DNA of 64,000 nt. It comes from Bugula neritina. Taxonomy: Eukaryota > Animalia > Bryozoa. The DNA is taken from positions 9,665,150 to 9,729,149 of the forward strand of contig OZ037772.1 in NCBI GenBank assembly GCA_964035545.1, read 5' to 3'. Of this stretch, positions 9,684 through 58,486 are shown one piece after another (within the stretch, counting starts at the first letter, position 1; each line of letters begins with the position of its first letter). A program made the position numbers and the translations under genes. Below the pieces are notes generated by a model, which was not told the DNA's origin, searched no databases, and saw only the letters and a list, made by a program, of their open reading frames with translations.

Positions 9684-12600
9684 ATGGAAGAAGAGTTGTC
9701 TCCTCCAAGTTGTATTCCAGGTGGGAATATTCTGTACATTATTTGTTATAAAATATATATAACTTTGTTTGACCTACTTATTCTAGATATACAATCCTCA
9801 ACAAGGAACTATTCTACAAATATTTTTATGGGTCATTAATTAATTGATGAAGTTTTGTGATTGCAACAACCAATGTCTATATAGATGTTCCATTAGTAAG
9901 TGAGTAATGATTTGTATTTTGCTGGAAAATGAAAATACGCAACACCTTATGATACCATAAATTTTAAAATAGGTCAAGTTTTGTGTAGGCAATAGTTTAT
10001 AATGAGGCATCATATTTATTACATTTTTACCTACAAAGCAACGTTGTAGTATTGAAGTATATCATTATATAACATATCTATAATAGTGGTATATGGTTTT
10101 AGATTTTTATGTTTTATGCAGTGCTTTGTATTATTTTGGTTTTTGATTTTGTAGATGGGAATTCTGAAGTACAGCGTGGGTTTACTGGTTAGTATTAAAT
10201 ATAGACCTGGTTGCCTTCAGTTACTGTCAGAGTTAAAGTTCACTTGCGTACAGCACTGTTAAAAATTTAAATAGGCTTTTTACCAATGTTTTCAGTAGTA
10301 ATTTATAGTATAGAATTATGCACCAGTGGTCTAGGGGTTAGAGCATTGGCTTAGTAAACACAAGGTCATGGGTTCGAAACCCTGTAAAGGCTATTATTGA
10401 TGTTAGGAAGAGTATCCAGTCATAATTGTTCCTGTGCCTCATCTAAATAAGCCCTTAGCCCGATTAAAAAACCCTTTCCATCAGGAAGTTCTCTCAAAAA
10501 GATAGTGACTAGTAACTGGTGTGAGATTAAACGATGTTTCGTCTCAATTGCAGCATCTTTTGTAAACCGTTTTTCAAGAAGCTTCAAAAGAACTTCGTGG
10601 TTAATAATTTAATTTCATCTTTCCTTGAACCCTGTATTTTTTTCTCTGTGTTGTGTCATGACCCAGATAATATTCATGCTATAGCCACTCCTATTATTCC
10701 ATGTACATTTGGAGTTGTGTTATCCATTATGGTGTAGCTACTGAGCTTCACTTGCCATTCATATATCTATATGCAGTCGTTTAACAATGTTTTCCTAACT
10801 GCTGTGATTTATTGCTGTGATGTATGAATCAACTTATTTCTCTGTTGATAATTTTTTAATTAAATTTTATTTGTAAAGTTTCCACAGTGTATAACTATCC
10901 TTTCTATACTAGCTGCCGCGCTGCCGTGAGTTTAGCAATATCACCTTGATGTTTACAGCCTCCTTAGGTGAGAGGAGCTTCTTGGGCAGAGGGAGTTTCG
11001 GCCGTGTGTTCAGGCAGTATGATGAACAGAACCAGCGGTTTCTCGCCTCCAAAGAAATAGATCTGGGAATGGTGACTGAAAAAGAGTATGCTGAGGTATA
11101 GGTAGTTTATTGGTGCGTTCCCGGTTTCCATAGCAACAACAGCAGGCAAACCACTAACAACGAGACAAGGGATATTTAGTGTTTTAAACAGTAAAGATGT
11201 TTACTCACAGTGTTGTATTGCGCTTGGCTCGGCTCCCAATTGAGTCAATTATGCTTGAAGTTCTAAACTAATTTCATACATAATTTGAAGACGAAAACAT
11301 TTTTACTGTTATCTTCCCCCTCCTGCATCTGGATGAATATTTTATCGAGATTTTCAAAGTTTGTTGTGTTTCTGTCTATTAAAAGTGCACAAAAAATCGG
11401 GTTTTAATATCTATCACTTGCAGTAATGGAAAGTTGGGAAAAGCCTGTGTTCTTGATCAAAATTGTAGCATAGCAATTTTCTCCAGAAAATATCAACCTG
11501 ACTATCAAAATCTATGAAGAAACTTAAAGAACTTGGGTTATTCAACTTTCTCCACTACTGCGCCTAAATACTATTAATTTAGGCAAATATAGTAAGCATA
11601 TTCTACCCTAGTGCAGTGCTATATTTTGTATACATCTTACAGAGAATCAAAAAGGCAGAAAGAGAAGTGTATGCTATGAACAGACTCAAGCATCCACATA
11701 TTGTCGAGTGTTTTTATAATGAGATCAGACAAGGTGTCTACGGTCCAGGTTAGCTGACACTCTTTCAGTTACTCACTTTTTTGTCTTTCTCTGTTTTTAA
11801 ATAGTTTCAGTCTCGCTGCATCTGTTATTATTATGTTATGTGAATTGAATTATTACATTTGATTCATATTGAGGCTTGTCATCAATTTATAAACAAATTT
11901 CACTTTTATGTCTTGAAGTAGAAGGAAATCATGTTCATCCAACAGTCTGTAGCATAAATATGTGGTAGTGGAGCTTTATTGTTCAAAAATATGCATCCAT
12001 CAGTTATTAATGTGGGCAAGTGTTGTTGTGGGTAGAGTATATAGATGGGTGGAGTATATGGATGGGTGGAGTATATGGATGGGTGGAGCTTATGAATGGG
12101 TGGAGTATATAAATGGGTGGAGTATATGAAAGGGTGGCGTATATAGATGGGTGGAGTATATAGATGGGTGGAGTATATAGATGGGTGGAGTATATAGATG
12201 GGTGGAGCTTATAGATGGTTGGAGTATATAGATGGGTGGAGTATATAAATGGGTGGAGTATATGGATGGGTGGAGTATATAGATGGGTGGAGACTATTTG
12301 TAGACGAATAGGTTTACTTATGCTTATTACATCATTTATAATATGATTGAATAGCTATTTTGTTGCCTATTTTAAAAAGGAAAATATAATATATTGTGGG
12401 CATGATTAGAATAGAAAACTTTCACATAGATACTTGAGGCCCAGACAGATGGAGCGAAACGTCAAATTTCAGCCATTTTCAAAAACGCCAGAGCAGAAAA
12501 ATAATTTACATAGTTTAATCGTAGTCTAATGTGGAAAGAAATAATTTTGCTCAGTTTGTGACTGCATATAGACAAAACAAAATGGCCGACATTTCATTTT

Positions 12601-15600
12601 CATCTTACCTACTTGCATACTTATTCAAATTGACAAGTTTAACACAAGTAAGATTTATAAAGCTATAGATTAGTTGTGATGCCATCACTAATAGCATCTT
12701 ATTACTAATAGATTCAAAGCTCATGTGCATTTACATGGAGTATGTATCGGGAGGGTCCGTGAAGGACTGGTTGAAAAAATATGGCGCTTTCAGTGAGGCC
12801 AGAACTAAGAGATACACTTTGCAGATGCTAAGTGGTCTCCTATATCTACATGAACAACGGTTTATTCACAGGGATTTAAAGTGTAAGTCGATGGGTTGTT
12901 TTTATCTCTGTCTGTCTTCAAGTCATCTGTATGTCTACTACTTGAGTGTTAGCAGACGTCTGATGTTAGGGAATGAGTCATTGTTTTTCTTTTCATCTGT
13001 AGTGTAGAAACCAGCCATTGGTTTGGTAAGTTTAATTTTTAAAATTATTTTCAGTTACCTCATGCTTCTACAAAAAAGCTTTTCAACTGCAAGTGATGCT
13101 ATTTAAGTATTTTTAAACATTTCCTTGTGAAAAAGTAAAAATTGTGTAGAACTATTTTATTATAAAAATTGTGTCAGGACTACTTTACAGCTGCTAATAT
13201 ATGTTTACAACTGTGTGTGTTTTGCAAGCGTTGATTCAGCAATAGCTTTTAGCTAATACTAAGAGCTCATTGCCTAGTAACTACTACTGAACAGTGAGTT
13301 TGAGGACGTTTGCACTTAACCAGGAAATTTTCTGTTTTACTTGTTAGTTTAGTCCTTAAGTTTCACCCGTGGTTGCTTCATTACATAGTAGAGAAATGCT
13401 GCTAGGTTTCACAATTTACATCTGTTGTTATATCTACTTTTACACCTACATCTAAACCTACTTTTAAATCTAACTTTGCACCTGCTTCAACACCTACATT
13501 TACATCTACCTTTACACCTACTTTTACACCTACCTTGCACTTACTTTTACATTTACATTTACCTTTAATATCACAATCAGTAGACTATTTTATTTGTATT
13601 GCAGAAGCATAACCTAACAGCATCCTATGATATAAATGGAGATACACAAAATTTGTGTTATTATTTATTTTCCTTTCCTGATTTAGGTTCAAACATGCTG
13701 TTTGGTGAAGGAGACAGCATCAAGCTGGCAGATTTTGGACTCTCGAAGGAAAGTCTTTGCTCAACATATGAAAGTAAAAGGACACTACACACAGAGGCTT
13801 GTGGTACAGCTCATTATATGGCACCAGAAGTTATGGCTGGAGAGGAATATGGCCGCAAATCAGATATTTGGTACGTCCATTTTTCCATTTTAGAAATGGT
13901 AGCATTAAGCTCTATAGAGTTAAATTGCTTAAATTACTTGTTTTCTCACCAGGAGTGCTGGAGCTACTGTGGTGGAGATGTTGACCACACAACCACCCTG
14001 GTATCAGCTGAAAGATTTCCAAGTCATGTACAAGATCAATTTGAAATCAGAACCTGAATATGTCCTTGACTCTAGTCTAAGTCCTGAAGTTAGAAATTTT
14101 TTGAATGTGATATTCAACTATGACAGCCGAAGTCGGCCTTCGACTGAGGAGTTGTTGCAACATGATTGGCTAAATGACCTTGAACTTCCAGCAGGTGATG
14201 GACATAATTTAATTTTGTGGCTTTGTTCGTAAATGTATGTTGATGGAAGTACATCCAGTTATACTAGTTAGTTGTCGTCCGCCATGATACTTTATCAATT
14301 AAATGTTGAAACACATTTAAATTATTTAAAAATAAAATTTTAATATAAATAAAATAACTAGAAGCTAATTAAAATGTTTTTCAAGACAAATTCAAACTCA
14401 ACTCAAAGTTTTGAGTCACTTTAGATATAGATTCATTACCCTAAGACCAGGGTAATTGAGAAATATTTTCTTCTAGTTTGTATTCTAAAGACTTACTCAC
14501 ATGCCAATGTAGTTTATTTTTCCACCCGATCATTGCACAAGGTTGGCTAATAAATTATACTAATTATCAAACTGTCTAAATTGGACAGAATACCATGTTT
14601 AGTCATGTGACTAGACATTCTATCAGCTTAACTTGCAGTTCATCGGTTGTGTTTATAAAAGTGTAGCTCTCAGCCTTGCTCTCTGTATTCTGGTGTCATT
14701 CTGGTGGTTTCCGGAAAGGTTCTAGAAAGATCTGGTGCCCGATAGGTCCTGGTTCCATCAGACTTCTGGTTTCATGACGTTTTCTGGTGCTGTAAGGTTT
14801 CTGGTTCTACAAAGATTCTGGTTCCCAAAAGGTCTTGGTTCCATGAGGTCTCTGGTGCCATACGGGTTCTAGAAGAGGGTTTGAGTTCCACTGGAAAAAA
14901 TTTTTTTTATAAACCTGCACATCCTTCTTAGCTGTATTGCTGATACATTTTATCTGTGATGTAGATGAGGATGTAATGGATACAGATCTTCTAGAGAATT
15001 TTCCAGAAAGAGTCAGCAATTGCTCTCCCTGTGATGTGGTGCGTTTGTTCTGCATTCAATGGTTACTAATGAAATATATTTCAACTGTTCCATGGAAAAT
15101 ATTATTGTTTTCAAAATGTTGTTTTTTGTTGAGTAACAGGAAATTAAGGGAACTTTATTACTGTATATGAAACGATAATGGTAATTGCTAAGATGGTTAA
15201 ACAGGTATTGTCAATTGAACCAAAATAAAATCTAAATTACTCAATAATTGCAAATGTTTTGGTGTAGTTGGTCCCGCTGGTGGCAGACAATTTCTAATCT
15301 AGCTATTTATTTCTTATCTCATTCTTTTAGGGAGTCCAGAAAGATGAAGAACAGAGCCCAATATATCGTTCTCTTTCAATTCCTTCTCTTTCCAGTTGTG
15401 TCTATGAAGATGTGAATTACGGGTACTTTAAATCACCCAACTATGAGGTGCTTCAAAAAGTATGTTATTTTTTCTTTTAAAATATGTTCTAGCTTTAATC
15501 TGATTTGTAATTGATGCGTTCCCTCTATATCTTACTAAGCTGCCGGTCCTGAAATCTTAATTCATGACATATAGAATATACCATATTTAATTCACGGATC

Positions 15601-18173
15601 TGTTGAATACAACCATGTTATCCCACATCCCACATCCACAAGCTACAAAATGGGGTCTAAGCCCTTCTCCCGCCCCATGGATTTTTGTTAGGAATAGATC
15701 GGGGAGGCAGGCACTGTATTTTGGTTTCAACTACGACATTAGATTAAAAATTTAAATATCTGCAGGATAAAATAATTTTACTAAAAAACTCCATTTGTCG
15801 TTCAACCTGCTCTTTTATCACAAAGGATATTTTTATTTGGAGCACTTTTCATATTTTTTATAGAAATTAACATGTGAGAATTTTTATTTCAATTATTAAA
15901 GCAAAGCAATAGAAAGAAATTCCTTCAGAGGGTAAAACAACTCTTTACTAAAAAGAAAGCCAGTAAACCTGTCAGAAAACGTGCAGTTGAGAAAGCCACC
16001 ATGACTGAGCCGGTAGACTTGGGTTCAGAAGATTATGCCATAGTTAGTGAGGAAGGCTCCTCCCTTGTGCCGCAATATCACTATAGCGCCAGTTCTTCAC
16101 TGCACGACTCATACGGATATGAAACCCCAGGTACATGTAACCATTGCAGACATGTAGAAGCTGTTAGTATTTGTAGCAACAATTATAATCATATAATAGA
16201 GTAATATCACTATTATATTATATAATGTTATTATATATTTATATATGTTATATAATTATATAATACATTGTTGTACATTATACTATTTAAAATATCATGC
16301 TTTAGTAGCTTACACAAATAACGGCTATTCCAGAAATGTTTTTAATGTATTATGTATTGATATTATTGTATTATAATATATTAAATACTGGTATTACTTT
16401 ATTATTATAATTATGTTATAATATGTGCTGATATAGTATATTATGTTACACACTGATATCACATTGTTATTGTAGTAAACAATGTACTGATATATGCTAT
16501 AATATTATTATAATATATTTTATTATGTATTGATTTTAGTTATGCTAATAAACTATTATCTGAGTCAGCCAATTAGAATGTATCTGTAACTCTGCAATTT
16601 CAGACCTACTAGCCAACCAGTCTCCATACATCAACGTCCAGGGTTCAGCAGACGATGATGTGGAGACAACTCTCATGCAGACAAACCTTGGTGTATACCA
16701 ATTTACAAGTGATTATATTATTATATATTATTACATAATAATATTCTATTGTATTATAATGCAGTATTTTATTGCAATATGCTATATTATGTTTCTATGT
16801 AATATATTGATATATGTATATTTTATTGACCTCCAGATTTTTTTTCATTCACTAAAGCAACATGTATGTTCAAAGCCATCGCTATACAGAACAATTAAAA
16901 AAGCTAATCTTGGACGTAACTTGCTATGGCAATGTACAGCAGCTTAGAAACTTTTTTATTTCAAGCAATAAATTGGGTTTTATTTAAAAGTAGTTATTTA
17001 CTGCATTGGTGGAAAGTTTTATTTTATTGTGAGGTAGTTTAACTGTCTGAATTTAACTTTAGTTTGAAACTCAGTTGTGGCTAGTAACAAATTATTTTTT
17101 TCTTGAGGTGCATTTATATTGGAGTACTAAGTTGCGATTAATTTTACCATGTTAACACATTTACATCTAAATTAAGTAATTAAGAAATGCCGATATCTGC
17201 AACGGTTTATCATTTCCTTATACTATTATTATGAAAAAGTCATCACAAGGAAATGATTTTAAGGAGGGGCTTCACAATGCAGCTTTTCACCTTGACCAAA
17301 TTGAATTTTTGACTGAAGATCGTGAATGTATCAGCGCACCCTTACAGTTTCAGTTCCTATAGCTATAGCTAGCTGTAGCACAGTTTAATATATTTATATA
17401 GTTATAATGGACCTACTTTATTTATTGTAGACGAACCAGATAATGATGACACTGTATATATCAATGTACCAGACTTCACACAGAAAGCTGTAACAAGCAA
17501 TGTGGACACTGCACGTACTCTGGAGAAAGTACCGGAAGTAATCATCAACTCGGGTAATTGCTGAATTATTTCACCCCCTCCCCCCCCAAAAAAAATATTT
17601 CAAATTTATTGCGTCTAATTGTTTAAGTCAGCTTTAAGCTTGTTGTATTGTGTCAGTTACCAATAACATTCGATGAAAGTCAGCAATAATTACTATTAGT
17701 TTTATAGTATTGCAAACTTCAGTGCCGAATGAAATACTCGTCAGCAAAAGTTTCGTTATAAAACAGAATAATTTGAGCATTCAACCCTCAAACAGTCTGT
17801 AGATAATATATAAAAATATTTTCATACTGTGTGGATGTATTATGAATTCTTTAATTAATTGTGCAAAATTTTTTTTAAGAGTTTGTCTCCCTTGCTCTTT
17901 GTCATGTTATGGTATTAAGTGGCCCCTTTCGTTTCGTCATAATTTTCTGATGTGTATGCACTAACTAAAATAAAAAAAAACCATACACTATATTCTCAAC
18001 ACTTACATGAAATAATCACATATTACATGCCTAGGGCTATCTAAGCTACTTTTGCTATGCGATTATATCACTTTTAAAAAGAAAACTTGAAAAAAAGTTA
18101 CATCTTTACTTTCTAAATTTTCTAATATATTTTTCCAGAGATGGTGTACGATGTCCCTATGACCACCTCCTAG
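9684..18173 (+). CDS. MAP3K (MEKK2/3-like, STE11 family) Ser/Thr kinase, copy 1, with long tyrosine-motif C-terminal tail (~519 aa)
   Basis: Exons 9684-9720, 10155-10187, 10959-11095, 11643-11748, 12712-12882, 13687-13870, 13953-14194, 14965-15038, 15331-15459, 15929-16130, 16604-16690, 17431-17553, 18139-18173 are all GT-AG and in frame. Motifs: [80 protein letters not shown], close to MEKK3 MEYMPGGSVKDQLKAYGAL / [24 protein letters not shown]. Kinase exons are secure; the first two exons and the tail exons are less certain. Confidence 0.85.
10320..10527 (+). mobile_element. tRNA-Thr-derived SINE
   Basis: Same family; B box gggttcgaaaccc; lies in an intron of kinase copy 1. Confidence 0.85.
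11420..11561. mobile_element. ~150-bp MITE, copy B
   Basis: gcagtaatggaaagttgg ... ttcaactttctccactactgc; homologous to 9151-9302. Confidence 0.55.
12030..12293. repeat. 17-bp minisatellite (agatgggtggagtatat) x~15
   Basis: Head-to-tail copies in an intron of kinase copy 1. Confidence 0.95.
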
Positions 18174-19571
18174 CTGCATGATTAATGAATGTAGAAGTTG
18201 GAAATATGGCTGAATCAATGTCTGTTATGGTCTCAGTACAGCTGTTTCCCTTCACTGAACTCTGCATAATGTTTACCTTATTATGACCCGAATTATGAAC
18301 GCATTAATCAATATTGTTATAAATGCAAGATTTTGTATTATTTTCATAATTTTACCCAGACTGTTGTGGTATAGATCCACACTGACTCAACTCATATTGA
18401 ATTACATTTGTTTTGCTATTATATCATAACTTTTCTATAAACTTGTTTTTATTATATTTTACATGAATATATGAAAAGTAATGTTTTATTATTTTTTATT
18501 TAGTTTTAATTTTACGTTTTTCAAAAAAATCTATGCATGCTTATATTTTTTATAATTTCAACAGTGTAAGCTAGTGCCTTTATGTGCCATATTAATAAAT
18601 CATGGTAAAACTTTCTATTCAAATTTTACAAAACTTTGACTTTTACTATTGTGAATTATCAGTGTATAGTGTTTATTACATTTAAGATACTTTAAATATA
18701 TTTGCCACTATAGGTTTAAAGATTTTTTTCTGGTTAAATTACTGTTTTTCAATTTTCTGCTCTTCAAGTGTCTTTTGCAAAAATTCAATTTCACTTCAAA
18801 TGTGTAGAAACTTGTCACTTTACTATAGTAAATAGCTAGCTACTGTAACATAGAGATTCTTATTTACATGCGATATAAAACATACAAACATTCCTAACCT
18901 TTACTATAGCCTACAGATTATAAGGATTATAATTGTGACTACTGTACTACATAAAAAAGCATTCAAAATTCTATTGGAGTAAAGCTATACTACAGTGTAC
19001 ATAATACAATTATTATGTTCAAAAGAAATTGACTGGACTACAACATGAAGTTTTCTGTACAAGTTTTAAATACTACATTGAAGCGTCTTTCTATGAAGTA
19101 TAGTTGGGGTAGTCATAGAAGTTTTTAGAGGATAGTAAATCTAGTTTTCAGCTAAAACAGGGGAACAGTGAAGTTTAGTAATACACTATAAGTGTAACAT
19201 TCACCTTATCATTATGAACAGTTATGCTTCTGAAATATCACTTGACATATTTGAATGTAACATAATATAGTTGTTACTTGTTAGCTATTTACTAATATTA
19301 GTAGTACTCCTATACGACCTTTGAACTTTGCTGGAAGTTTGGAGTTTGGCTAAATTTGATAGCTGCTTTTAGTGTCTGTTTTAGGTAACTGATTATATTA
19401 AGTTTATGGCAATTTATAATAAACTTTTCAGTTATATCTGAACTTTAATCCTTTACATCATTTTAAGTGACTGGATCAGGCATTTTTGTTTTTCCACTGT
19501 TTACATTTAAACTTAAATAAAAAGAATTAGGATCATTTCAATTGATTTGATATAATGCAGAGTGACCTATA

Positions 19572-19906: not shown

Positions 19907-22900
19907 TAGTTATATAATAACAGCTTTCAAAATGATACGCAATAAGTAATTTTTATACTGACGCACACAGTTACTTCAGAACAAATAGAGGATGAAAATC
20001 CATTACAATATATTAGCCTATATATTTTTATTTACAATGATCATGATATGAGGTTTATAATTTTTGTACAACAATTACATCTTTTAAGGTGAAAACGAAA
20101 CTGGTAAAAAATATACCCATAGACTGTATTCTAGCCTTCTTGCATGCAATAACTTATACTAGGCACTTTGAAAATAGCTCATCTTGTTTACAGACACCAC
20201 AACTTTTTGACACATAATGTAAATCATGATCCTTTTAGCAGCCAACTTTAGATAAAAACATTCTATATTGTATGTGAATTAGATAAATATTGCGCAGTAG
20301 TTATAACTTTTGTAGCTTTGTTCTGAAGCATATATTCGATTTCTTCAAGTAACCGGTATATATGCAAAGGAGATTTGTTTTTTTAATTACACTACAGTCA
20401 TTTGATGTTTACAAGAAATATAATGATCAGTGGAAAAACAGTGTTAAGATAGCGATTTTAAATTAAGCCAGTAAAGTGTCCAAAGATCATGCAGCTATAT
20501 AGCAGAAATTGGATGAAGGCTGTCAAAAGAGTAATTAGGTTGTTGGCAAAGGAACTCACAGTAAATTTATAAACATGCGCTATTTTAATAATAATATTGT
20601 TATAAATTTGCCCATAGAAGAATAATCAAAATGCCACCTCTACCAATCAAATATTCAGTCTGTGTTATACTTAATTTTTACTTCTGCATTTCAAATGTTA
20701 AACGTTATGCTGAGACTTGTTTCTACCAGTTTGCTACAGTATTTTTCTTCCAACTAACTAAATTATTTTTCTTCTAACTTACTAAAGTATAGTTCTATGG
20801 GCTTTCTAAAGTACATTTTTGGCAGCCAATTAAGTTAGTGTACTTCTTCCAGTGCTGAAACATGTTTTAAAATGATGAATGCATTAATATATTATGCCAA
20901 CTATACATAATCTCTAGTACTGTATTGAACATTGTAAAAGTAAAACAATGTTGTCATTTTTAAAATGTTTTATAGTAAATTGTAGTGTTCTACTGCAATA
21001 ATTAAAATATTGAAAGTATTTCATGCCATGTCTATGTGTTAAGTTTATATAATTTACTTTATATGTATTTAATGTTTATATGAAAATTGATGTACCAAAT
21101 ACACAATGTCAATGGCAATGCGTTAATATGTAGTAACTATACATGCAGTCATACTTATTATGAACAAGGAGGTTTCAATACAAAACTACACATTAGATTA
21201 GCCAGATAGTTAGAATTCAGCTGCAATTGCTATTCAACACATGGACAGTTGCAGATGCATTATAGTGTCAGATTTATGCATAGACTCAGTTTTATACTTT
21301 AGAGTTTGGAATCTTTGTTTGGGCAGACTACAAGACACCATTGTTAAAACCATGAGCCTATTCTATACTCCGCCCCTAATAGCATGACCTCTAGCAATCC
21401 GGTGACCCTGAAAGTGATATAACTCAGTAAACAGCAGCCAAATTTTCACTTCGCCTCGGCTGGGGTTACAAGCTAGTTAGTATAAATAATTTTTATCTAC
21501 CAATCACCTACGATGCTGGCAAAATCTGAAACTTGTGATAAAGATGTGCGGGTTGCCTTGTTGCCAGCCATAATTTGTTTTAACATAGTTTTTAAGATCA
21601 CTGTTGTAGGCTATGACATAGTGTATATAGTAGCATGCAAGGAGCATTTGCTTAGTTGCATTTTTAATGTATAACACTAAGTTGGGTTTAGTTCATGCTT
21701 TTTTACTTAACTAAACCTATACTGTGTCAACCAAATAGTGTGGAGATCAGTTGAAGTCAGGTATGGTTAGTTTGTAAAAATTATGAACAGCATAACATTG
21801 TGAGTAAAAATTATATTTGCTTATTTGTGTTTTTTATTTTACTAGCATACCTTCAGATTGCTGACATAATAATTTTATTATCATTTGCAATTTTTTCTTC
21901 AAATTGAAAATTTAGAAGATGGCTATATATTGCATATATATTACATGCATACATACATGCATATATATATATATATATGTACACATATATATAAGATTTG
22001 TACTGAGGAAATTACTTATTTAGGAGTGATTATCTACAGTCAATTCTAAAGTCTACTCATTCTACACAATCAGCACAGTAATCAATGATAATAAAGGCTC
22101 TGAGTTGTATAAAATATGTTCCTTTTGATTTGCCCTTGACTACAAAGCTGTTGAAACATTTGAGGTTATGTCACTGAATAGCTTGAATTTTGTGTTATAT
22201 AACTATCATACAGGTTCTGTTGTAAATTTATGTGAGTTGAATTACACTGTGTGGGTTATTGAGAATCTATATAAGAGCATGTAACCTATGTGTGAAAGTG
22301 TTGGTCAGAGCTAACAATCCTGTATGCAATAATCCAGTATTGATTTTAAGAATAATAATCGAGTGAGAAAAACTACATAAGAATTACATAGGTAAAAATA
22401 TAAAAGTACAGAGTACTACAACAACTAAACAATTAAACTAAGCCTGCTCTACTAGATAACAACGTGGGGCTGGCGAGGATGTGTTATTTATACCTGCGCA
22501 GCAAACACTCTTGCATACAGTTAACGTATAGACAGCCATGTGGTCACTAGTCAATCATAGCTTAGTAGCGCAGAATGTCAATGGTGTTGGGTGTTATATA
22601 AGGCTTAGCCTCCAGGTTAGGCATATGACATATGAATGCCTGAAAATCACTAAAATTCATAAATTTTTACCCCAAACATTGTTGCTTAGATTTTATAACA
22701 TATCAATCCATATTGGAATAATTTGTTTTGATCTCTTATTGTACAACGACTTTCATATTATGTTCAATGAATAAGATATGGATTATAGTTTAATGAAATC
22801 AAGCTTTGAGCTGCAATCAAAAGCTGCTTGACAAAACCAAAATATTTTAAGGTATGCAAAGAATAATGTCAATTCACACTACAGCTAAAATAAGCTTACT

Positions 22901-23001
22901 TTTAGCTGTAGTGTAAGCGGGACATAGGGCTGTAGGGTTTACTGTAAAGTATTATTTTAGGATATTTAGCTGTTAGCTAGATGACGTGGTAAAATGATGC
23001 A

Positions 23002-25106
23002 ATGGCTGAGGGCTTCTTCACAGCAGATCTCGATTTGAACGGTTTGTGTGATATAATATAACTACTTCTACTCAAGTTAATTGAACTCATCCAAATCTTT
23101 TATCTAAAATAATTTTCTTTCTATCGATCTTTTTTCTGTTCCTGCAGTTGTAAAACTGATAGTATTAAAATTGTCTGTTAGTTATGGTACACCAAAAATT
23201 ATATCTGTTAGAATCGATAAATGTTGATTTTTCTTATGATAAAATAAGTACAGAAAGCATTTAAAATTTTTAAAAAATTGAGACATGATTCGAAATAAGC
23301 CATTGTTGTGTTTCAAAGGAGACTCAAGATGTAGATTATCTATTTAATGGCAAAACAACTATCTTAGCTTTGGGTCTGTTGGTCCTAATGAGACCGATTT
23401 CTAAATTCCTGGCAACATTATTTACCTATGCTCTATAATGGTATTCGTGTTTTTCACAGCTTCTTTTACTACAAAAGAATATCTTGGTAAAGGTAAATTT
23501 GGGAATGTCTACAAACAGTATGATGAATCGAGTAAACGATACATAGCTTGTAAGGAGGTGGACTTGGGTTTGGTTACTGAGGCAGGATATGAGAAGGTAT
23601 TCCTGTATTTATATATATGATTGATTTTATTTGCCATTTAATCAAGGTTTAACATATAGATGTTTTTCTAGTGTAGTTGATGCATTTGTTACATTCTTAC
23701 AACTAAATGCTCAGCTGAAGCTCTTGATATTTGAAAGTTGTTTTCATATGACCCCCCTTGTAATGCCTTGTTGCCTTTTCATCAAGCATATGACTTTTTA
23801 GAATAGTATTTCAAATGGTAGTTTTGAAGTACAGCTTTAATTAAAGAATTTCTGACACACTTTATTTGTGCAGTAGGAGAATATCATTTTTATGTCTTAG
23901 CTGTCATTAAGGATTGAGGATTGCAAATTCAAACAGTTTTGCTTTATAAGAAATTCTGTGTCCATGGCTTTTGCTAGGTTCAGGAGTTTGTGATATTATA
24001 AATACTATTTAGTGGTGACTTTCATTCAATTCTTTTTAGCGAACAGCAATTCATGACTAGACTAGCTTGAAACTTTTAGCTAGTCTAGTGGTTAGGCTGT
24101 GTGTTGCAGCAGCTAAGAATAACATGCAATGATACTTAGCAATAATCAGTATTAATTTTATAACACCATGGACTTTGAACTTAACTTTAAAATTATCAAA
24201 AAGTGATCTAAAATCCCTAATCAATTTGTGCATAATATGTCTGAACACAATTTATCGTAAAACAATCTGTAGAGAGTAGGGAGATGAGGGAGCAGCCGTG
24301 CTTTAACTGTTGAAGTGTTTGCCTATTAAACGTGAAGTCATGGGTTCGAACTCTGACAAAGGCCGTTAGTGATGTTAGGAAAAGCATCCAGCCATAATTG
24401 CTCCTGTGCCCCATCTAAATAAGCATGCTTTAACAAAAGCCCTTGCTATTAGGGGTTTTCTCATAGGGATGGTGACTACGTAAACTTACGTGAGTGAGTC
24501 TGTGTAGAAGATAGCTTAGAAGATATATGTAAATATATTTTATTACTGCATGAATAAATTGTATGTCAGGAAACAGATAATGGCTTTTTAACAAAAAAGC
24601 TAGCCAAACTTTTTTACAATAAAAAAATGCAATAATTATACAAAAAAAAATTGCTAGCTTAGCTATCAATTGAAATGACTGAAAAGTTGTTTGTGCATCT
24701 AAATATAGTATTCAAACAAAAAACCTTACCTATATATCTGTCAAGTGAGATCCAAATGTTGCACTTACTTACAAAATCTAATTTCTAGAAAGTTAAAGAA
24801 GCTATGAAGGAAGTGAGTGCAATGAAAAAATTGACCCATTTAAGTATCGTCAAGTACTATGGGTATAAAGTAATACAGGCCGACCAACGCAACTCAGGTT
24901 TGATAAAATTGAAGTATTAATATTATATGAAATTTGTCCCCAACAAACAATCATTGTTATATATCATTACTATTAGGAACAGTATCCATCTACTATAAAT
25001 ATATTTTAATTCACCTTTTGTTTGTTTCTGTAATATACTTTAGTTGATTTATATTGCTAAAGTATTCTAAGCCAGTATGTTTGCAGTAATATTAAAATTT
25101 TATTTA

Positions 25107-25164
<58 letters not shown>

Positions 25165-26710
25165 CATATTAGAGACTAAAATTCTATGCATTTATATGGA
25201 GTATGTTTCGGGAGGGTCTGTGAAAGACCGTTTGAATAAGGAAGGAGCTTTCAATGAGATTCAGGCTATAATATATACAGAGCAATTGTTACTTGCTGTC
25301 TCTTACCTTCATAAACAAGGTATCATACACAGAGACTTGAAATGTAAGTGGAATTTAAAGTGTTTAAGTAAAACTTGAAATGTAAACTTGCTGTACATAC
25401 AATAAAATATGCTACAAACCTCTCAAAATATTTACTTTTTTTACAAACATATAGAAGAATGTTAATTTAATACTATATTTTTCTATATGTCTGTCATAAT
25501 TTTTATTCCAGGTTCCAACATGTTGCTAAATGGTCTTTTTATCTTGAAACTAGCAGACTTTGGAATAGCTAAGGAATGTCATCATTCAACACTTAACAGT
25601 AGAGGAATGCTACACACTGCTACTTGTGGTACAGCTCACTATATGGCACCAGAAGTTATGGCTGGGGAGGAGTATGGTGGGAAGGCAGATATTTGGTCAG
25701 TTTTCTTCTTTTAGAATAAAAGTATATGTTATTAAATTTCAGCAAGTTTTTAACTTACTACGTAATCCTTCTTACTTTATAAAAGGAGTGCTGGAGCTAC
25801 TGTGGTGGAGATGTTGACCACACAACCACCCTGGTATAAGCTGAAAGATTTCCAAGTTATGTATAGAATTGGACAAAAAGAAAAACCGGAATATGTCCTT
25901 GACTCTAGTCTGGGACCTGAAGTTAGAAATTTCCTGGATGTGATATTCAACTATGATAGTGAACGACGACCTTCGGCTGATGAACTTTTGGGACATTGCT
26001 GGTTTTCTTTCTGTAAACATCTTGGAGGTTAGTGGATAGTCGCAAAACACAAGTTTTATAGTTGTGACTATTATTTAATAAAATATAATTCAATTATACA
26101 TAGTGCCAATGTTGTTTATAACTTCTATTTTATAGCTTACACGTACACTACTTATATATTAAATTATGTTCATTACAACATAAATAATAGTTTTTAGCCT
26201 AGGTTTTGGTAGAATAGTTGAATTTGCTGCTTTGTGTTAGGTTTTTATTACATGTACTAATTAATAAAACCAGTAAATTCTATTGCAACCCAATTTTGGT
26301 ATAATCCGTAAGAATAAAACCAAGTTTGTGTAACTAGAGAAGGAGACAACTTCAAAGAGTGACATTTCCAAATGTTGCACTATTCCGTTCTTGAACTTGT
26401 AAAAACAACCTTTAGTGCATTAGCTGGGCTCAATACATTGTAAGAAATATCGTGTTAATTTCTTTTCTGGGTCTGAGAAAATTTGCAGCTATGTAATGCA
26501 TATAATTTAAATGTGTAAATGATGTTTCATACAAGTAAAGAGCAGACAAATCTAAATGTTATTTTCTGACAATGCATTATACAGCATCTCACTTTTGCTC
26601 TCGTGTAGAACACTTTAGGTAGCCAAGAGTATTAACTAAAATTCCTGTATGTTTGCGTTGCAGTTGCGGCAGAGCAGGCTGTCTCACTTTTACACGCAGT
26701 CTTTAGCTGA
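23002..26710 (+). CDS. MAP3K (MEKK2/3-like) kinase, copy 2 (~309 aa, kinase domain plus 15-aa tail)
   Basis: Exons 23002-23041 (MAEGFFTADLDLN), 23460-23596, 24789-24897, 25173-25343, 25512-25695, 25786-26027, 26664-26710 (VAAEQAVSLLHAVFS*). Motifs [21 protein letters not shown], APE are intact. Unspliced read-through would stop at 26032. Confidence 0.88.
24287..24497 (+). mobile_element. tRNA-Thr-derived SINE
   Basis: Same family; gggttcgaactc; lies in intron 2 of kinase copy 2 and is absent from the paralogous introns of copies 3 and 4. Confidence 0.85.
25110..25161. repeat. (TA)n microsatellite
   Basis: Seen directly; ends about 11 nt before a splice acceptor. Confidence 0.95.
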
Positions 26711-29815: not shown

Positions 29816-30780
29816 GTATAATTATATGCTATATGCTATATATAGTATATACTATATTCGTTACTTGAGAAAATTTATGTAGTTTAAATTTGTTACTTGA
29901 AATGCATTTTCTCATCTGCCTTAAACTCTAGTAATCTTCCACATGTAGTTTAGTAATTTACTGTAAGTTCCAATGAAATGGAAAGTTGTGTAGCTCAGCG
30001 TAACATATGCTTATAAGAATAAGCCAGGGCCCCTGGTGGCAGTCTCTTCAGGTAGTCTATAATAAACAAGTTATTGTTAAATGCTGCCAAATGTAGCACA
30101 CAAATATTGAGTGTTGACCAGCCACTTATTGGTGTTGAGTAAATTTATCTTGGAGTGACCATACAGTCAGAGTTTGAAGTGTACTTAATATACGCAATAA
30201 TCAAAGTAAGCAAGGATATGAAAAGGTTCTGGGTTGTATAAAATATGCTCCTGTTGATTTGCTCTTGACTACAAAGCTGTTGAAATATCTGAGGTTATGT
30301 CACTGAATACTTGAATATGACTGATGTCTTGCAGTTTGATACAGAAATGTTGTCTTACAGAAATAATTCTGATTATATGTAATCTTACAATAGTATAATT
30401 TCAGTTTTGTATTACTTTCATAGTTTTATATCCTTTCACCTTAAATTTTTATAGATATTACTCCACATAAAAATGCTTTTGTTTTGCTCTCTTATTATGC
30501 AATAATTTTTATATAAACCTGTTCTAATTACTTTAATGAGAAAAAATGTTTTTATTTGAAATTATCCTAACAGAATCAAGCTTTGAGCTGTGATACTAAG
30601 GTGTTTGAAATAATAAAAAATCTTGAAGTTTGAAAAGAATAATGTCAGTTCACACTACAGTTAAAACAAAGCTTCCTTTTAGCTGTAGTGTAAGCAGTAT
30701 ATATAGGGCTGTATGATTCACTGTAAGGTATTATTTTAGGATATTTAGCTCTTAGCTGGACAGTGTGGTAGAAAAGTGAA

Positions 30781-33700
30781 ATGGGTGGGGGTTACTCTAC
30801 ATCAGATCTCTCTTTTAATGGTTTGTTTGATATAATATAACTACTTTTATATATTTTAATTGAACTCATGCAAATATTTTAGCTAATATGTTAGCATGAA
30901 GCAATTTCATGTCTATACTTTTGGGCTCCTGCATTTGTAAGACTTGTATTTATTGTTTGGCATTTATGGGTCACAAATGATCAAGTCTGTTAGAAATAAT
31001 AAGCAATGAATTTCCTTGTGATAAAATAAGTACATCAGGCATTCAAGATTACTAGAAACTTGAGACATGAGACTGAAAGAAGTCATTATTGTGTTTCAGG
31101 AGATACAGATTCTCCATTTAAATGTAAATAAAACTGTTACCAGCTTCAAGTATGTTAATTCCGAATTTTAGATTTTTAGCTACATTATTTAGTTGGATTT
31201 TAGATTTTAGATTCATTGCTACATGAGTTAGCTGTTGCTCTATAGTAGTTTATATTGTTTTACAGCTTCTTTCACTAGCAAAGAACTTCTTGGTAAAGGC
31301 AGTTTTGGGTTTGTCTACAAAAGGTATGATGAACTGAGTAAACAATACATAGCCTGTAAGGAAGTGGACTTGGGTGTGATTACTAACACAGAATATCAGA
31401 GGGTATTCATTTATTTATGTGACTTCACTTCCTGTTTAGAAGGTTAACATATACATGTAGGTGTTTTTCTAGTGTAGTTGATGCAGTTGTTACATTCTTA
31501 CAACTAAAATGCTCAGTTGATGCTTTTGATGTTTGAAAGTTGTTTTCACCTTAACTGCCTTTTTATCAACCATATGATTTTTTAAAAGCATCATTTCTAA
31601 CTTTTCTGTATGTAAATCATCAAGCTTGTAGTTTGAAAGTATGGCCTCAACATTCCTTGGCACATTATTTTTGTAGTCATAAAATATTCATTTAAATTTA
31701 ACTATCTGCAGACTGTTGGAGGCTTGTATGTTCAAAAACTTTGTTTTAGAAGAAATTTTCTGCTCATGCTTTCGTTAGGCTCTTGAGTTTGTAACATCAT
31801 AAAATTAAATACTAGTTACTGCTGACTTTCATTTTTGTTGTTCTTATCTACTGTAACTCACAGTTTAATTATTTGGTTGGCTTGAAACTTTTCGCTTTGA
31901 GCTTTTAAGGCAGTTCAGTGAATAACTTGTGTGTTGCAGCAGGTAAAACTATCAGGCTTTATATATCTCTTGAGTGAGATTCATGAAATACTTCAACTGT
32001 TGCATATAGACAAAATTTTGTTTTCTAGAAAATTGAAAGAGCCATGAAAGAAGTGAGTGCAATGAAGCGATTGGACCATGAACATATAGTCAAGTACTAT
32101 GGTTATGAAGTAATACAGGACCAACACAAATCAGGTTTGATAAAATTACTATCTGATTATGAGTTTTGTGCTGATATGTCCAATAAATTATTACTATTAG
32201 ATTAAGCAGTATTCATCTACTATAAATATGTTTCAACTCATCCTTTGTTTTCCTGTGTCATATTTTAGTTGATTTATATTGTTGACGGACTCTATTCAAT
32301 GCATTAGCTAGTATATTTATAGTAATATTCAATCTTTATATCACCAATAGAGACCAGGGTGCTATCTATTTATATGGAGTATGTCTCGGGAGGGTCTGTA
32401 AAAGACCGTTTGAATAAAGAAGGAGCTTTCAAGGAGACTCAGGCTATAAGATATACCTGGCAGATGTTACTTGGTGTTTCTTATCTTCACAGACAACGTA
32501 TTATACACAGAGATTTGAAGTGTAAGCATTAAAATTGAAAAGAGATTTTAAGTGTTTAAGTTATAGGATTGGAATTTTAAGCTTTCTATACACAGAAAAA
32601 TCTGCTGTGAACATTCTACAACATCTAATTTTTATTACAAACTAAGCAAAGGGTGTTAATTTGATAATATTATTTTTTAAATTTCTCTCATCTGTTTTTT
32701 TCAGGTTCCAACATGCTGCTAGATGATAATGATGAGATAAAACTAGCAGACCTTGGGATAGCTAAAGAATGTCATCATTCAACGCATGAAAGTAAAAGAA
32801 CACTACACACAGAGACTTGTGGTACAGCTCATTATATGGCACCAGAAGTTATGGCTGGAGAGGAGTATGGCAGGAAGGCTGATATTTGGTAAATTCTTTT
32901 TTTCATAGAGCTCTAAGAAAAACCTGTTTTCAAGTTTTAATGAGTTTATATTTTTCTACATAATCCTTCTTACTCTAAACAGGAGTGCTGGAGCTACTCT
33001 AGTGGAGATGTTGACCACACAACCACTCTGGTATAAGCTAAAAGATTTCCAAGTTATGTATAGAATTGGACAAAAAGAAAAACCTGCATATGTCCTTGAC
33101 TCTAGTCTAGGACCAGAAGTTAGAAGTTTCCTGGCTGTGATATTCAACTATGATAGTGAAAGACGACCTTCAGCTGAGGAGCTATTAGAACACGACTGGT
33201 TGCATGGTTGTAGATTTACTAAAGGTTAGTGTAGAGTTACTGAATCTTAGTGTAGAGTTACTAAATACAAAGATTTCGTTGGGTTGTTTGAAGGCTTTCA
33301 ACTTAATGTTGGAAGATTATGCCACTGCCTTGCTTTAACATATTCATTGCTGTAGTCAAGCTTTTTTAATCTGTTCCAGCTGTTTGTTTTCAGTATGGAA
33401 TTTTGCACCATTCTGAAAAAAGTTACAAAATAGTTTAATTACGCTGTTGACCTACATTTTCATTTGGTCTAAGACTAAATGTATGTTTCGATTTATATAT
33501 TGATGGCAGGAATATTTTAATTAAGAAAAATATAAGCTTGAATATAAAAACTGGTGTGCCCAACTATAATTAACATATAGTGAAAATAATTAGTGGGGCA
33601 AATTGTACTTGGTTCAACTCGCCTCACTTCCTATGCGGTTTAACTAGTCCCACACTTTCACGGTACAAATTATTGCTGTGACTGAAATATTTCTGCAACT

Positions 33701-38153: not shown

Positions 38154-38980
38154 AACAGCTTATATAGCATAGTCTCTCACAGTTATATACACATGTGCAT
38201 ACACAAAAATTGTTAAAACTGTATTAATTTGTTACCCAACTATAGTCCAGTAAGGGGTGCAGTTTATAGTACTTTTAGCCATGCCTCAATTTCATAGACC
38301 ACATAATGGCAGACAATATTATAATATGTCTCAATAACAGTACTCTGCTATGTATATGTGATTTATGGAATTTTAGGGGACAGTTCAAAGGACTATAGGC
38401 TTATAGTAATTATAGTTAGATGACAGTTTAAAGGTTGTTACACTTTTGTTACATGGCTGCACAAAAATCATGTTAAGAACTATAAATACATTCTTTATTC
38501 ACTCAAGTTGGATCTAATTATCAGCAGCAACTTATATATATAGCAAGTTCTATAATTCTAATATTGGCAGTCATTACACCTGTATATTTCGTAAACTTTC
38601 TTAATATATATTTAAGCATTTGTGTCTTTATGTACATATTTAATAATTTTAATAAAGAAAAACACTTACTCAAAACGCTTCATGAAAAATTCAAATTCTA
38701 AGTATTGTATGCGTACTGACTTAAAATTAAGACATACATGTTGTATTCTGTAAAGATTAGTTTATTTGAAGTATTTAGCATATGGAATTTGTTTTACCAA
38801 TCTCTAAGAGACAATCAAAATATTTTAAGATATACAAACGATAAGTTGATTCACCCAGCAGCTAAATTAAGCTGGCTTTTATTTGTAGTGTGAGCAGGGC
38901 GTATGGTTGCATGATTTACTGTAATGTATTATTTTAGGATCTTTGGTATAGTTAGCTGGGTAATGTGGTAGAGAAGCGCA

Positions 38981-41900
38981 ATGGCTGAGGGTTACTCTAC
39001 AGTAGATCATCCCTCTTTTAATGGTTTGTTTGATATCATATAACTACCTTTATATTTTTAATTGAACTCATGCAAATATTTTAGCTGATATGTTAGCATG
39101 AAGCAATTTCATGTCTATACTTTTGGGCTCCTGCATTTGTAACACTCGTATTTATAGTTTGATATTTATGGCGCACAAATGATCAAGTGTGTTTGAAATA
39201 ATAAGCAATCAATTTCCTTATGCTAAAATAAGTATATCAGGCATTCAAGATTACTAGAAAATTGAGACATGACATTGAAATGAGTCATTATTGTATTTCA
39301 AGAGAGACTCAAGGTGCAGATTCTTCATTTAAAGGTAAATAAAAATATTCTCAGATTCAAGTATATAAGCAATGCTATAATGATTCTAGATTTTAGATTC
39401 ATTGCAACATGAGTTAGCTGTTGCTACTTGCTATATAGTAGTTTATATTGTTTTATACAGTTTCTTTCATTGGTAAAGAACTTCTTGGTAAAGGTAGTTT
39501 TGGGTTTGTCTACAAACAGTATGATGAACTGAGTAAACAATACATGGCTTGTAAGGAGGTGGACTTGGGTGTGGTTACTGACACACAATATCAGAAGGTA
39601 TTCCTTTATTTATGTGACTTCATTTTCTGTTTAGAGTTTCAAGATAAATGTTTTTCTAGTGTAGTTGATGCAGCTGTTAGGTTCTTAGAACTAAATGCTC
39701 AGCTAATGCACACGATGTCTGAAAGTTGTTTTCATTTGAGCATCTAATAGCCTCATTGCTTTGACATTTTTTTATCAAACATTTGTAGCTTTCCTTTATG
39801 TAATTCATCAAGCTTATAGTTTTTCAGTACAACTTCAATTGATAGATTTTTCATCAAAAATAATTTGCAAGTATTTATTGACATTTAAACACTATAAAAA
39901 AGTAAACTAAATGACTAAAGATCTTTGAACAGAAACTTTCTGCATCTGTTGAGTGAAATTCATGAAATATTTCAACTGGTACACTCAAAAATCTTTATTT
40001 TAGAAAGTTAAAGAAGCTATGAAAGAAGTGAGTGCAATGAAAAGATTGGATCATTCTAATATAGTCAAGTATTATGGATATGAAGTCATACAGGACCAAC
40101 ACAAACCGGGTTTGATAAAATTGATGTATTAATATGAGTTTTGTGCCCATATGCACAATAAATTATTATTATTAGAAACAGTATTCATTTACTATATTTT
40201 AATTCATCTTTCGTTTTTATCTGTGTCCGAGTATATTTAATTCATACTGTTGAAGTACACTGCTCAATGCATTAGCCACTATGTTTATCTAGTAATCCTA
40301 ATTTTGTTTCATTTTCAATAGAGATCAGGGTAGCATGTATTTATATGGAGTATGTCTCCGGAGGGTCTGTGAAGGATCATTTGAACAAAGAAGGAGCTTT
40401 CAAAGAGACTCAGGCTAAAATATACACACTACAGATGTTAGAAGGGGTCTCCTACCTTCACGGACAACGTATCATACACAGAGACTTGAAATGTGAGTAA
40501 TGATTAAAGTTTACTACCCACAGAAAATACTCCATAACATTTTCAAAATATTTACATTTTATTACAAATGTATGGAAAGATGTTGAGTTGGTAATAATTT
40601 TTAAATATCTGTCATCGGCTTTTCAGGTTCCAACATGCTGCTAAATGGTTGTTATATCTTGAAACTAGCAGACTTTGGAATAGCTAAGGAATGTCATCAT
40701 TCAACACTTGACAGTAAAAGAACTCTTAACACTTCTACTTGTGGTACAGCTCATTATATGGCACCAGAAGTTATGGCTGGAGGGGAGTATGGCAGGAAGG
40801 CTGATATTTGGTCAGTTTTTTTTCTATAGCTTATATTATAACAACATGTTCTTTTATTTCATTGAGCTTAGAACTATTATATAGTTATTCTTCTTTTCAA
40901 CAGGAGTGCTGGAGCTACTCTAGTGGAGATGTTGACCACACAACCTCCCTGGTCTAAATTTACTGATTATCAAGTCATGTACAGAATTGGACAAAATGAA
41001 AAGCCTAAATATGTCCTTGACTCTAGTCTAGGACCAGAAGTTAGAAGTTTCCTGGATGAGATATTCAACTATGATAGTGAAAGACGACCTTCGGCTGATG
41101 AGCTTTTGGGACATGACTGGTTTGGTTAGTTTAGAGTTGCAATAAGCTTATTTAATATTATTGACTAAAGCTTTATTAATAATTGGATTGCTATCACTCT
41201 TTAACCTTTGTTTATATACTTGTATATATTATTATGCTCATCAAAAGCTAAGTAACATTTCTCTTGATTGTGCTGCCATCATTATTTAACCTTTATAAAT
41301 ATACTAGTATAATACATTATCATGCTTATTAAAAAAATAAATTATAATTTAGTTTAGGTTATGACAAAGTGGTTGAATGCTCTGCTTTGTAGTAGATTTC
41401 TTATCATATATATATAATATGTAGTTATAGAGCCAGGTAATTATGTTACAACCAATTTTTGGTATCTGGATTGTTATAACTATCGAAGAAGACAATTTCA
41501 AATACTATTTTCCAAATGACACTGCAACTGTTGTTATAGTGTCTATTTTTCACGTGTTGAATTTTTTTTAGATGATCTCCTGGGCTTAATATATTACAAG
41601 GTTTGTTGATTCTCTTCATTTTTTGAATGTGGAAAAATTTCGAAGCTAGTAAATTTATTATAATATGGGTCATTTTACTTAATTTATTACACACTGGATA
41701 TCTTCAGTTTTCAGCTATTTTTCACAATTTAACTGCTAATGGACATGGGTTTTTTGGCCAAAACTAGTAAAACATTAATAAATACACTTAAATAATCAGA
41801 GTTATTTTTAATTTTGCTTCATTTCCCATGTTTTTTTTCCTAATTATTCAGTTACTTTTGATTGCGGACCTTTACGGTTTTTTCGTAACGGTCCGCACTC

Positions 41901-53441: not shown

Positions 53442-54415
53442 GTTATTGAATTCGCTAGTAAGCTATTAATACAATATTCTCCTTTATATATAATTATAAA
53501 TTTAATGTTGACATTTTAGTGTGGGGGGGGGGGGAGTAAGGCTCAATACTACTAATAAAACCAAACTGTACTCATAATTAGAAATAAGAATGAATAAAAA
53601 AGGCTTCAATGTTTCCAAAGCTATAAATGTCTACATGAATTTCCCTGCCAACAATTCCGCTAAAATAATTGTAAATTATAATTATCTAATTCTAGCTGCA
53701 AACTTGATTTAGTAACTATAATAAAAATTGAAAAACTTTTAGACTGAACTGCTTCTGCAGTTGGTTTTTTTTTATCAGTCTCAGCATAATATTGCCCTGT
53801 ATTTGAAACTTTTAATAAAAGTAAACAATTCCCAGGAGTCACAAAAAGATTTCAGTTATAAAAATACTCTACAAGCATTATCTTATAATGTAATTGATAG
53901 CAACTGGGTTTATTATGTAACTTCATAAAAAGCTGATCCATTCATTCACAACTAATATTTCTGATTGTAGATAACTGAAGTGTGATTTATTCAAACAGAT
54001 AGAAAATAAATCTGTAAAAAATAAATAGAAAAGTGATGAATTAAATAGATGGCTGGCAGGTAGTATTAGACTAGTGGAATGGTGTGATACCAAGGCCTCT
54101 AATTTTAGAGATAGTTGACTAGCATTACATAGCATTGATCTCTCAAGTGTCTACTTAGCTTACAAATAGAGCACATCACCAGAGAATGTTGCATATAAAA
54201 AACTGCTACACAAAATATGCAAAACTAATATTAGTACAAATGTCCAGTTCCAAGTCACTTCTACGAAATAATGAGTAGATATTATCCAATCAAAACAGGT
54301 GTATCTTCTGCATCTAATAAACAGCTGTATGTCCACACTGACTATTACCTACGAGATTGCCTAGGAGTACGAACTGTAAACAATTGAATAGCCTAAGATC
54401 AGTGGACATCCACCC

Positions 54416-58162
<3,747 letters not shown>

Positions 58163-58280
58163 CTGAAACAAGACATGGTTTTGTAGAGATACAGGAGAAG
58201 GTGGGGGGGGGGAGAGAGATACTCAAACAGGTGAAGATAACTCCTGATAGTAAATACATTATGAGTTGATGAATAAAGAT

Positions 58281-58486
58281 GGGGAGCAGGGTTAGATCAC
58301 TGGCTTAGTAAGCACAAAGTCATGAGTTCGAACCGACAAAGACCATTGGTGATGCTAGGAAGAGCATCCAGTCATAATAGTTCCTGTGTCCCATCTTAAC
58401 AAATAAGTCCTTAACCTGCCTTAACAAAAAAACCTTAGATCAGGGGTTTCTCACACAGGGATGGTGACTATAAACTTGTGTGAGTT
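58281..58486 (+). mobile_element. tRNA-Thr-derived SINE with candidate target-site duplication
   Basis: Same family; flanked by the direct repeat tgagttgatgaataaaga (about 58262-58279 and 58481-58498). Confidence 0.88.

Follow-up and report, generated by a model that had tools for sequence, protein, structure and literature searches.

A MEKK-like kinase gene of the bryozoan Bugula neritina and the putative linear-motif tail encoded behind it

The stretch of the Bugula neritina genome analyzed here (contig OZ037772.1, positions 9,665,150 to 9,729,149 of the forward strand; 64,000 nucleotides (nt), hereafter the window) contains a tandem array of five lineage-specific kinases. The first of these, copy 1, is followed by six small exons with a series of tyrosine motifs. 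An earlier note on this DNA had read kinase and exons as one gene and the encoded tail as a phosphotyrosine docking scaffold, through which tyrosine kinases could be coupled directly to a mitogen-activated protein kinase (MAPK) cascade. The locus thus raises the question of whether the six exons are coding, whether they are spliced to the kinase and what their product may do. Taken as a whole, our analysis tips slightly towards a MEKK-like kinase with a young, disordered, six-exon tail of short linear motifs.

Exons were assembled by script from 9–19.5 kb of the window, and all introns are of the GT-AG type. The resulting gene lies on the plus strand, comprises 13 exons (9684–18173) and has a predicted product of 516 amino acids (aa) (Table 1). 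Exons 3 to 7 encode a complete kinase domain, in the translation of which GxGxxG, the beta3 Lys, the alphaC Glu, HRDLKxxN, DFG and APE can all be read. The six tail exons lie exactly where the earlier note had placed them, flanked by AG and GT and in frame with exon 7, which ends in phase 1 at 14194. Their 216 aa include 13 tyrosines, and each of the strings listed for them was found, i.e. IYRSL, VYEDV, NYEVL, DYAIV, GYETP, SPYINV, TVYINV, VYDVP and the basic patch KKKASKPVRKR.

A codon log-odds model trained solely on the kinase exons gives the tail 0.33 bits per codon in the proposed frame, whereas the two alternative frames score 0.01 and −0.06. Stop-free pieces of intron score −0.27 ± 0.23 with the same model. 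The window is AT-rich (~32% GC), and the GC content is 39–51% in the tail exons versus 21–35% in the introns. An exon-chain finder started at the donor of exon 7 regained the tail exons, with 15902 instead of 15929 as the acceptor of exon 10; the top-scoring chain from this donor leaves out exon 12. Generic splice matrices give low scores even to kinase sites that are beyond doubt, and strict thresholds mis-modelled the gene. A random-start null for the chain finder was set aside, as real kinase exons contaminated it. The exon sizes of 129, 87 and 123 nt were considered as a sign of cassette skipping, which was dropped, as three out of five is not unusual.

A search with exon 10 among 1.84 billion representative proteins gave one true match, P0001, a 71-aa genomic open reading frame (ORF) with 83% aa identity that sits on Logan contigs of SRR4020082-84. 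These contigs may belong to the Illumina data of 2016 from the symbiont project on B. neritina (SRP081292; PMC7576161). The search with exon 10 also hit P0002 (E 1e-4), a protein which is repetitive, has a stretch rich in lysine and was judged spurious. The search with kinase exon 7 matched only genomic ORF fragments and led to L009, an 8.2-kb metagenome contig of the Joint Genome Institute (JGI). This contig bears kinase exons 4–7 and all six tail exons 8–13, open and colinear. Its introns diverge by ~12% from those of the window, which suggests that it stems from a sibling lineage within the species complex. Nucleotide identity to L009 is 91–95% in the kinase exons, 86–100% in the tail exons and 83–94% in the introns; positions 18174–18667 downstream of the stop codon show 91%, slightly above most introns. 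The ratio of nonsynonymous to synonymous substitution rates (dN/dS) rises from 0.18 in the kinase to 0.51 in the tail. In the tail, 20 of the 59 changes are synonymous, versus 21.7% expected if it were neutral (estimated P about 0.02). Indel events number 55 in the introns, none in the kinase exons and two in the tail exons (+6 and −27 nt, both in frame). Ten of the 11 splice sites of exons 7–13 are kept, the exception being the donor of exon 11, where GT has become GC. This may be used as a GC-AG intron in the sibling lineage, or splicing may be altered there. No difference was seen in the last exon, stop codon included. Thus, codon signal, GC contrast, chain recovery and the orthologue together identify the tail exons as real coding sequence. 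The tail changes at about three times the rate of the kinase, yet it is under purifying selection and its reading frame is protected. Since nucleotide identity in the tail exons does not exceed that in the introns, the constraint is weak.

The tail is acidic, with 39 Asp and Glu versus 18 Lys and Arg and a net charge of −21, and it is rich in Ser, Thr, Pro and Val. It lies at the disorder boundary of the charge–hydropathy plot, and a single-sequence AlphaFold2 model of exon 10 lacks secondary structure, with a predicted template modelling score (pTM) of 0.13. A Pfam scan of tail exons 8, 9, 10 and 12 gave no domain. A transmembrane (TM) segment is likewise absent from the tail, where the maximum Kyte–Doolittle value of a 19-residue window is 0.35. 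The entire 516-aa model has neither a signal peptide nor a TM segment, and its N-terminus, MEEE, is without a myristoylation Gly. By these predictions the tail looks disordered. Searches of the same genome with exons 9, 10 and 12 return the gene itself and no tail homologue elsewhere, and exon 12 found no candidates among 5.8 billion proteins. Within the reach of these searches, the tail is unique to copy 1, and its sole outside match is the copy of the sibling lineage. At the junction between kinase and tail (14965–14985) the product reads ADEDVMDTD, which contains the DxxD string DVMD, kept in the relative; given that some members of the family are linked to caspases, it might be cleaved there, but this is pure speculation.

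The question of a link between tail and kinase was approached through the kinase family, which has at least 16 members in the genome. Of 16 paralogues examined, 15 have an in-frame GGT codon that is split G/GT (phase 1; the slash marks the exon–intron boundary) 1–14 codons past the kinase end, mostly at a good extended donor. Copy 1 has CAG/GTGATG at this family position, followed by a proper acceptor of matching phase at exon 8. This acceptor is identical over 15 nt in L009, and the open frame upstream of it contains no ATG. The paralogue L015 (C1:33.27 Mb) has an acidic exon behind its complete kinase. This exon offers no possible ATG and continues in frame into caspase-domain exons. Because this exon reads into the caspase exons and has no ATG of its own, the post-kinase donor is probably used in the family. 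On these grounds, exons 7 and 8 of copy 1 are probably spliced together to give a kinase–tail fusion. The hybrid protein proposed in the earlier note is therefore supported indirectly as to its structure, as the tail is coding, is conserved together with the kinase in the sibling lineage and fits the post-kinase phase-1 intron; the scaffold function given to it is a matter of motif resemblance only.

Several observations weigh against a functional tail fused to the kinase. Exon 8 has an in-frame methionine five codons from its start, Met305, which is kept in the relative, so the tail could come from a transcript of its own as a separate 212-aa product. The exact strings of the exon 7–8 junction were not found in the metagenome contigs, but those of the kinase-internal control junction of exons 6 and 7 were absent as well, which makes this result uninformative. 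Tail exons were not detected behind copies 2–5 of the window by tblastn, blastn or the chain finder. The GC at the donor of exon 11 is present in both contigs of the relative (L006 and L009), and the lack of excess identity of the tail exons over the introns belongs here as well. Two other explanations of the locus build on these points. If the tail were a separate small gene, its transcription would start in the 770-nt interval behind exon 7 and its translation at Met305, the product would be an acidic protein without domains, and the kinase would end 12 codons into the interval. Such a gene would agree with the conserved ATG, with AATAAA-like strings in the post-kinase interval and with copies 2–5, which appear to be kinase-only. 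Moreover, the chain finder also linked two adjacent kinase genes in frame (L018), and in-frame chains alone consequently prove little. A separate gene is opposed by the donor of exon 7, which is normal, occupies the conserved phase-1 position of the family and is kept in the relative, and by the well-formed, phase-matched and conserved acceptor of exon 8. The ends of copies 2–5, G/GTTAGT, would fit a secondary truncation in those copies and not in copy 1. We consider a separate gene unlikely.

The tail exons could also be non-functional, either as chance open segments or as young exonised sequence that is drifting or not expressed, in which case the motif array would be meaningless. The intron-like nucleotide identity would then be as expected, as would the lack of a homologue beyond a very close relative, and tyrosine at ~4% is what we estimate for AT-rich sequence, compared with 6% seen. 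Against this stand the frame-specific codon signal, the dN/dS of 0.51 with its excess of synonymous changes and the conserved stop codon and last exon. In addition, the 650 nt of tail exons contain zero frameshifting indels, where about four would be expected from the intron rate (our estimate). A non-functional tail is thus very improbable, and the fused, weakly constrained tail remains the explanation that we favor.

The kinase was placed by searches with single exons. Pfam PF00069 (Pkinase) matches exons 5–7, and the domain belongs to the active Ser/Thr kinase type. Among solved structures, human MAP3K2 (9p6a) is the best match of exon 6; for exon 7, which covers the C-lobe, STK10 and PAK come ahead of MAP3K2 and MAP3K5. 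The exon-wise matches are split between STE11 and STE20 members, and the copy-1 kinase is, as far as its sequence tells, a Ser/Thr kinase of the STE group and MEKK2/3-like. Its strings YGRKxDIWS, VVEMLT and RPS.EELL.H resemble those of MEKK2/3. The Ser/Thr kinase domain of the STE group is common to the bryozoan protein and MAP3K2/MAP3K3, but the bryozoan kinase is without the N-terminal PB1 domain. The model has 23 aa before the G-loop, with no PB1, SAM or other N-terminal regulatory domain, and the upstream ORFs are without a Pfam domain. MEKK2/3 terminate just after the kinase domain. Unlike them, bryozoan copy 1 has the 216-aa tail behind this domain, and it is one of at least 16 genes of a lineage-specific expansion. 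Our literature search found no paper on a bryozoan kinase of this kind.

Copies 2–5 of the window end differently from copy 1. Each of them terminates in G/GTTAGT, with a TAG stop inside the former donor. The T at +3, by which the donor loses strength and the stop arises, would explain the lack of tails behind these copies. The chain finder found no downstream module behind copies 2–5, and a possible short exon common to the regions behind copies 3–5 did not hold in the alignment. Elsewhere in the genome, two kinase loci (L015, and L005/L003 on C6) have caspase exons downstream. At both, the complete kinase is followed after ~0.4–0.9 kb by an acidic exon on the same strand and then by caspase exons (PF00656, E 1e-10 to 2e-11). 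In L015 the lack of an ATG in the acidic exon suggests a kinase–caspase fusion protein. At C6 the frame is kept only if the chain starts from a donor within a GTAAGT repeat, and the strong donor AAG/GTGAGT breaks it. This repeat is a short GTAAGT-containing unit that begins right after the acidic exon (~10760–10830 of the joined L003+L005 reverse complement), and it yields a series of candidate donors that differ in phase. At four further loci (L011, L012, L014 and L017 on C8:9.96–9.99 Mb, the latter two on the minus strand), the downstream exons in the phase-1 frame look like beta-propeller blades. An example is SVHNDRIYTLS..YTVRVHDLEGR; the Pfam match to WD40_like is weak (E 0.009) and below the cut-off. 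Thus, other members of the bryozoan family have the same kinase domain and post-kinase phase-1 intron as copy 1, but differ in their downstream modules. An apparent 'KQLF' likeness of tail exon 10 to linker sequence in the caspase-linked paralogues was not significant, and the window holds no caspase remnant.

We then counted the tyrosine motifs of the tail against 20,000 shuffles of its sequence. YxN occurs twice (0.65 in shuffles), YxxP twice (0.83), the immunoreceptor tyrosine-based inhibitory motif (ITIM) once (0.81) and the corresponding switch motif (ITSM) once (0.13), with P values of 0.12–0.57. The only class that is raised is YxxPhi, where Phi is hydrophobic, with 7 versus 3.2 in shuffles (P 0.016, uncorrected). 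Tyrosine makes up 6.0% of the tail versus 5.7% of the kinase domain. Ten of the 13 tyrosines are kept in L009 at 83% overall aa identity, so that the loss of three at 17% divergence equals the background rate. The tyrosines of the named motifs are kept in eight of eight cases and the motifs are intact in six of eight (DYAIV reads DYAMP and GYETP reads GYEIP in L009), the relative being too close for significance. By our own count, changes affect 3 of 32 motif sites versus 32 of 175 other aligned tail sites, which is not significant. The string YINVPDF is invariant in three haplotypes with V, I or L as the residue at −1, and the codons for Y, N and V differ between the two YINV copies at their third positions.

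One function that these motifs could have is that of a true phosphotyrosine docking region. Both YINV copies, YDVP, YETP, YEDV and YEVL would then be phosphorylated and bind SH2 domains of the Grb2, Crk/Nck and Src/SHP types, which would couple tyrosine kinases to the MAPK cascade. Phosphorylated YxN fits the preference of the Grb2 SH2 domain and phosphorylated YxxP that of Crk/Nck; YDVP is a motif of the p130Cas type, and Y[VI]NV a Grb2 site of the LAT/Shc type. Accordingly, the two YINV match the Grb2 consensus and YDVP the Crk consensus. The retention of all eight named tyrosines, the invariant YINVPDF next to a variable residue, the different codons of the YINV copies and the excess of YxxPhi are consistent with such a role, and at least 30 matches to SH2-domain exons were found in the genome. 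Kinases with a phosphotyrosine docking site are also a known principle: in HPK1/MAP4K1 (with SLP-76) and in FAK at Y925 (YENV, with Grb2), phosphorylated non-catalytic tyrosines recruit an SH2 adaptor. Those are single, deeply conserved and experimentally mapped sites, whereas the bryozoan protein has several putative motifs in a tail restricted to the genus. Docking is at odds with the YxN, YxxP, ITIM and ITSM counts, which are those expected from composition, with a tyrosine content like that of the kinase and with tyrosine conservation at background level. The two classes of tail sites differ too little to set the motifs apart, and DYAIV is altered in the relative. The kinase itself is of the Ser/Thr type (HRDLKxxN), and the YxxPhi strings would also fit motifs like the LC3-interacting region (LIR; SEDYAIV) or sorting motifs of the AP-2 type. 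Finally, no PH, PTB, SH3, TM or lipid-anchor module that could bring the tail to a tyrosine kinase was found by Pfam on the scanned tail exons, by hydropathy or at the N-terminus. A disordered region with YxN and YxxP strings is what the tail has in common with Gab, Dok, LAT and p130Cas. It differs from them in being attached to a kinase, in lacking PH/PTB, SH3, TM helix and palmitoylated anchor and in having just two YxN and two YxxP sites, as its composition predicts. By its sequence, the copy-1 protein has none of the testable features that define a scaffold. The assignment as a docking scaffold in the earlier note is not borne out by these data, and the same applies to the ITIM and ITSM fits: both motifs are defined for receptor tails and do not apply in the strict sense, because the protein is without a TM segment. 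SH2 docking as one possible use of the tail motifs is a doubtful but serious option, and a tail that is a true docking region with the full coupling is an unlikely one.

In the explanation that we favor, the post-kinase phase-1 intron would be the attachment point for varied C-terminal modules in this bryozoan kinase family. In copy 1 this intron would lead into the six small exons and thus into the acidic, Ser/Thr/Pro-rich tail that ends at 18173. The tail would serve as a regulatory or targeting region of the kinase made of short linear motifs, and its likeliest functional pieces would be the conserved Tyr-x-x-hydrophobic elements YRSL, YEDV, YEVL, YINV (twice) and YDVP. A combined scenario, with module exchange at this intron and a copy-1 tail that is a new, truly tyrosine-phosphorylated module recruiting Grb2- or Crk-type adaptors and linking tyrosine-kinase input to a MAPK-type or immune output, is quite improbable. 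A direct coupling of tyrosine kinases to a MAP3K would be notable if true, and the argument for it is one of motif resemblance. To us, the exchange of C-terminal modules across the family, caspases included, is the more striking pattern. One kinase chassis with several such modules offers a natural system for how signalling proteins gain connections. Provided that kinase and tail are indeed spliced together, copy 1 represents a clean case of a young, lineage-restricted linear-motif region gained by the addition of exons at a conserved intron.

Table 1. Exons of the copy-1 gene model, its paralogues in the window and the two kinase loci with caspase exons (window positions unless a genome locus is given; identities are nucleotide identities to L009)
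Feature	Position	Strand	Remarks
Exon 1	9684..9720	+	Putative start codon (MEEELSPPSCIP), proposed from reading frame and GT donor; outside the relative's contig
Exon 2	10155..10187	+	Short, N-terminal; proposed from AG/GT flanks and frame
Exon 3	10968..11095	+	Kinase G-loop GRGSFGRV and beta3 Lys
Exon 4	11643..11748	+	Kinase alphaC region; 92.5% identity
Exon 5	12712..12882	+	Kinase, HRDLK catalytic loop; Pfam Pkinase E 1.9e-14; 91% identity
Exon 6	13687..13870	+	Kinase, DFG-to-APE activation segment; Pfam Pkinase E 2.2e-11
Exon 7	13953..14194	+	End of kinase domain; Pfam Pkinase; terminates in phase-1 donor CAG/GTGATG, kept in L009
Tail exon 8	14965..15038	+	DEDVMDTDLLENFPERVSNCSPCDV; in-frame Met305; 96% identity, both splice sites kept
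Tail exon 9	15331..15459	+	IYRSL, VYEDV, NYGYF, NYEVL; 89% identity; sole indel +6 nt, in frame
Tail exon 10	15929..16130	+	Basic patch KKKASKPVRKR, DYAIV, QYHY, SYGYETP; alternative acceptor 15902; sole indel −27 nt, in frame
Tail exon 11	16604..16690	+	SPYINV; donor GT in window, GC in relative
Tail exon 12	17431..17553	+	TVYINVPDF
Tail exon 13	18139..18173	+	EMVYDVPMTTS and TAG stop; 100% identical in L009
Probable 3' untranslated region	18174..18599	+	Runs to AATAAA at 18594-18599
Paralogous kinases, copies 2-5	23474-26027, 31280-33224, 39466-41124, 49913-51683	+	48-77% aa identity by exon
Kinase and caspase locus L020+L015	G000:C1:33260100-33279900		Chain in frame; ETCSG
Kinase and caspase locus L005/L003	G000:C6:13617000-13636999	minus	QACSG

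Several introns of copy 1 contain tandem repeats, namely intron 7 at 14749–14870 (17-nt unit, 7 copies), intron 4 at 12029–12292 (17-nt unit, 15.5 copies) and intron 5 at 13428–13567 (12/36-nt units). The region of intron 7 is ~640 nt longer in L009. Upstream of copies 2, 3 and 4 lies a block of ~500 bp (22797–23288, 30574–31070 and 38813–39272) with 71–74% identity, which is probably a common promoter or 5′ region. At ~54400–58400 a GC-richer block with negative GC skew holds a minus-strand reading frame, the translation of which resembles a mitochondrial carrier (SLC25) protein.

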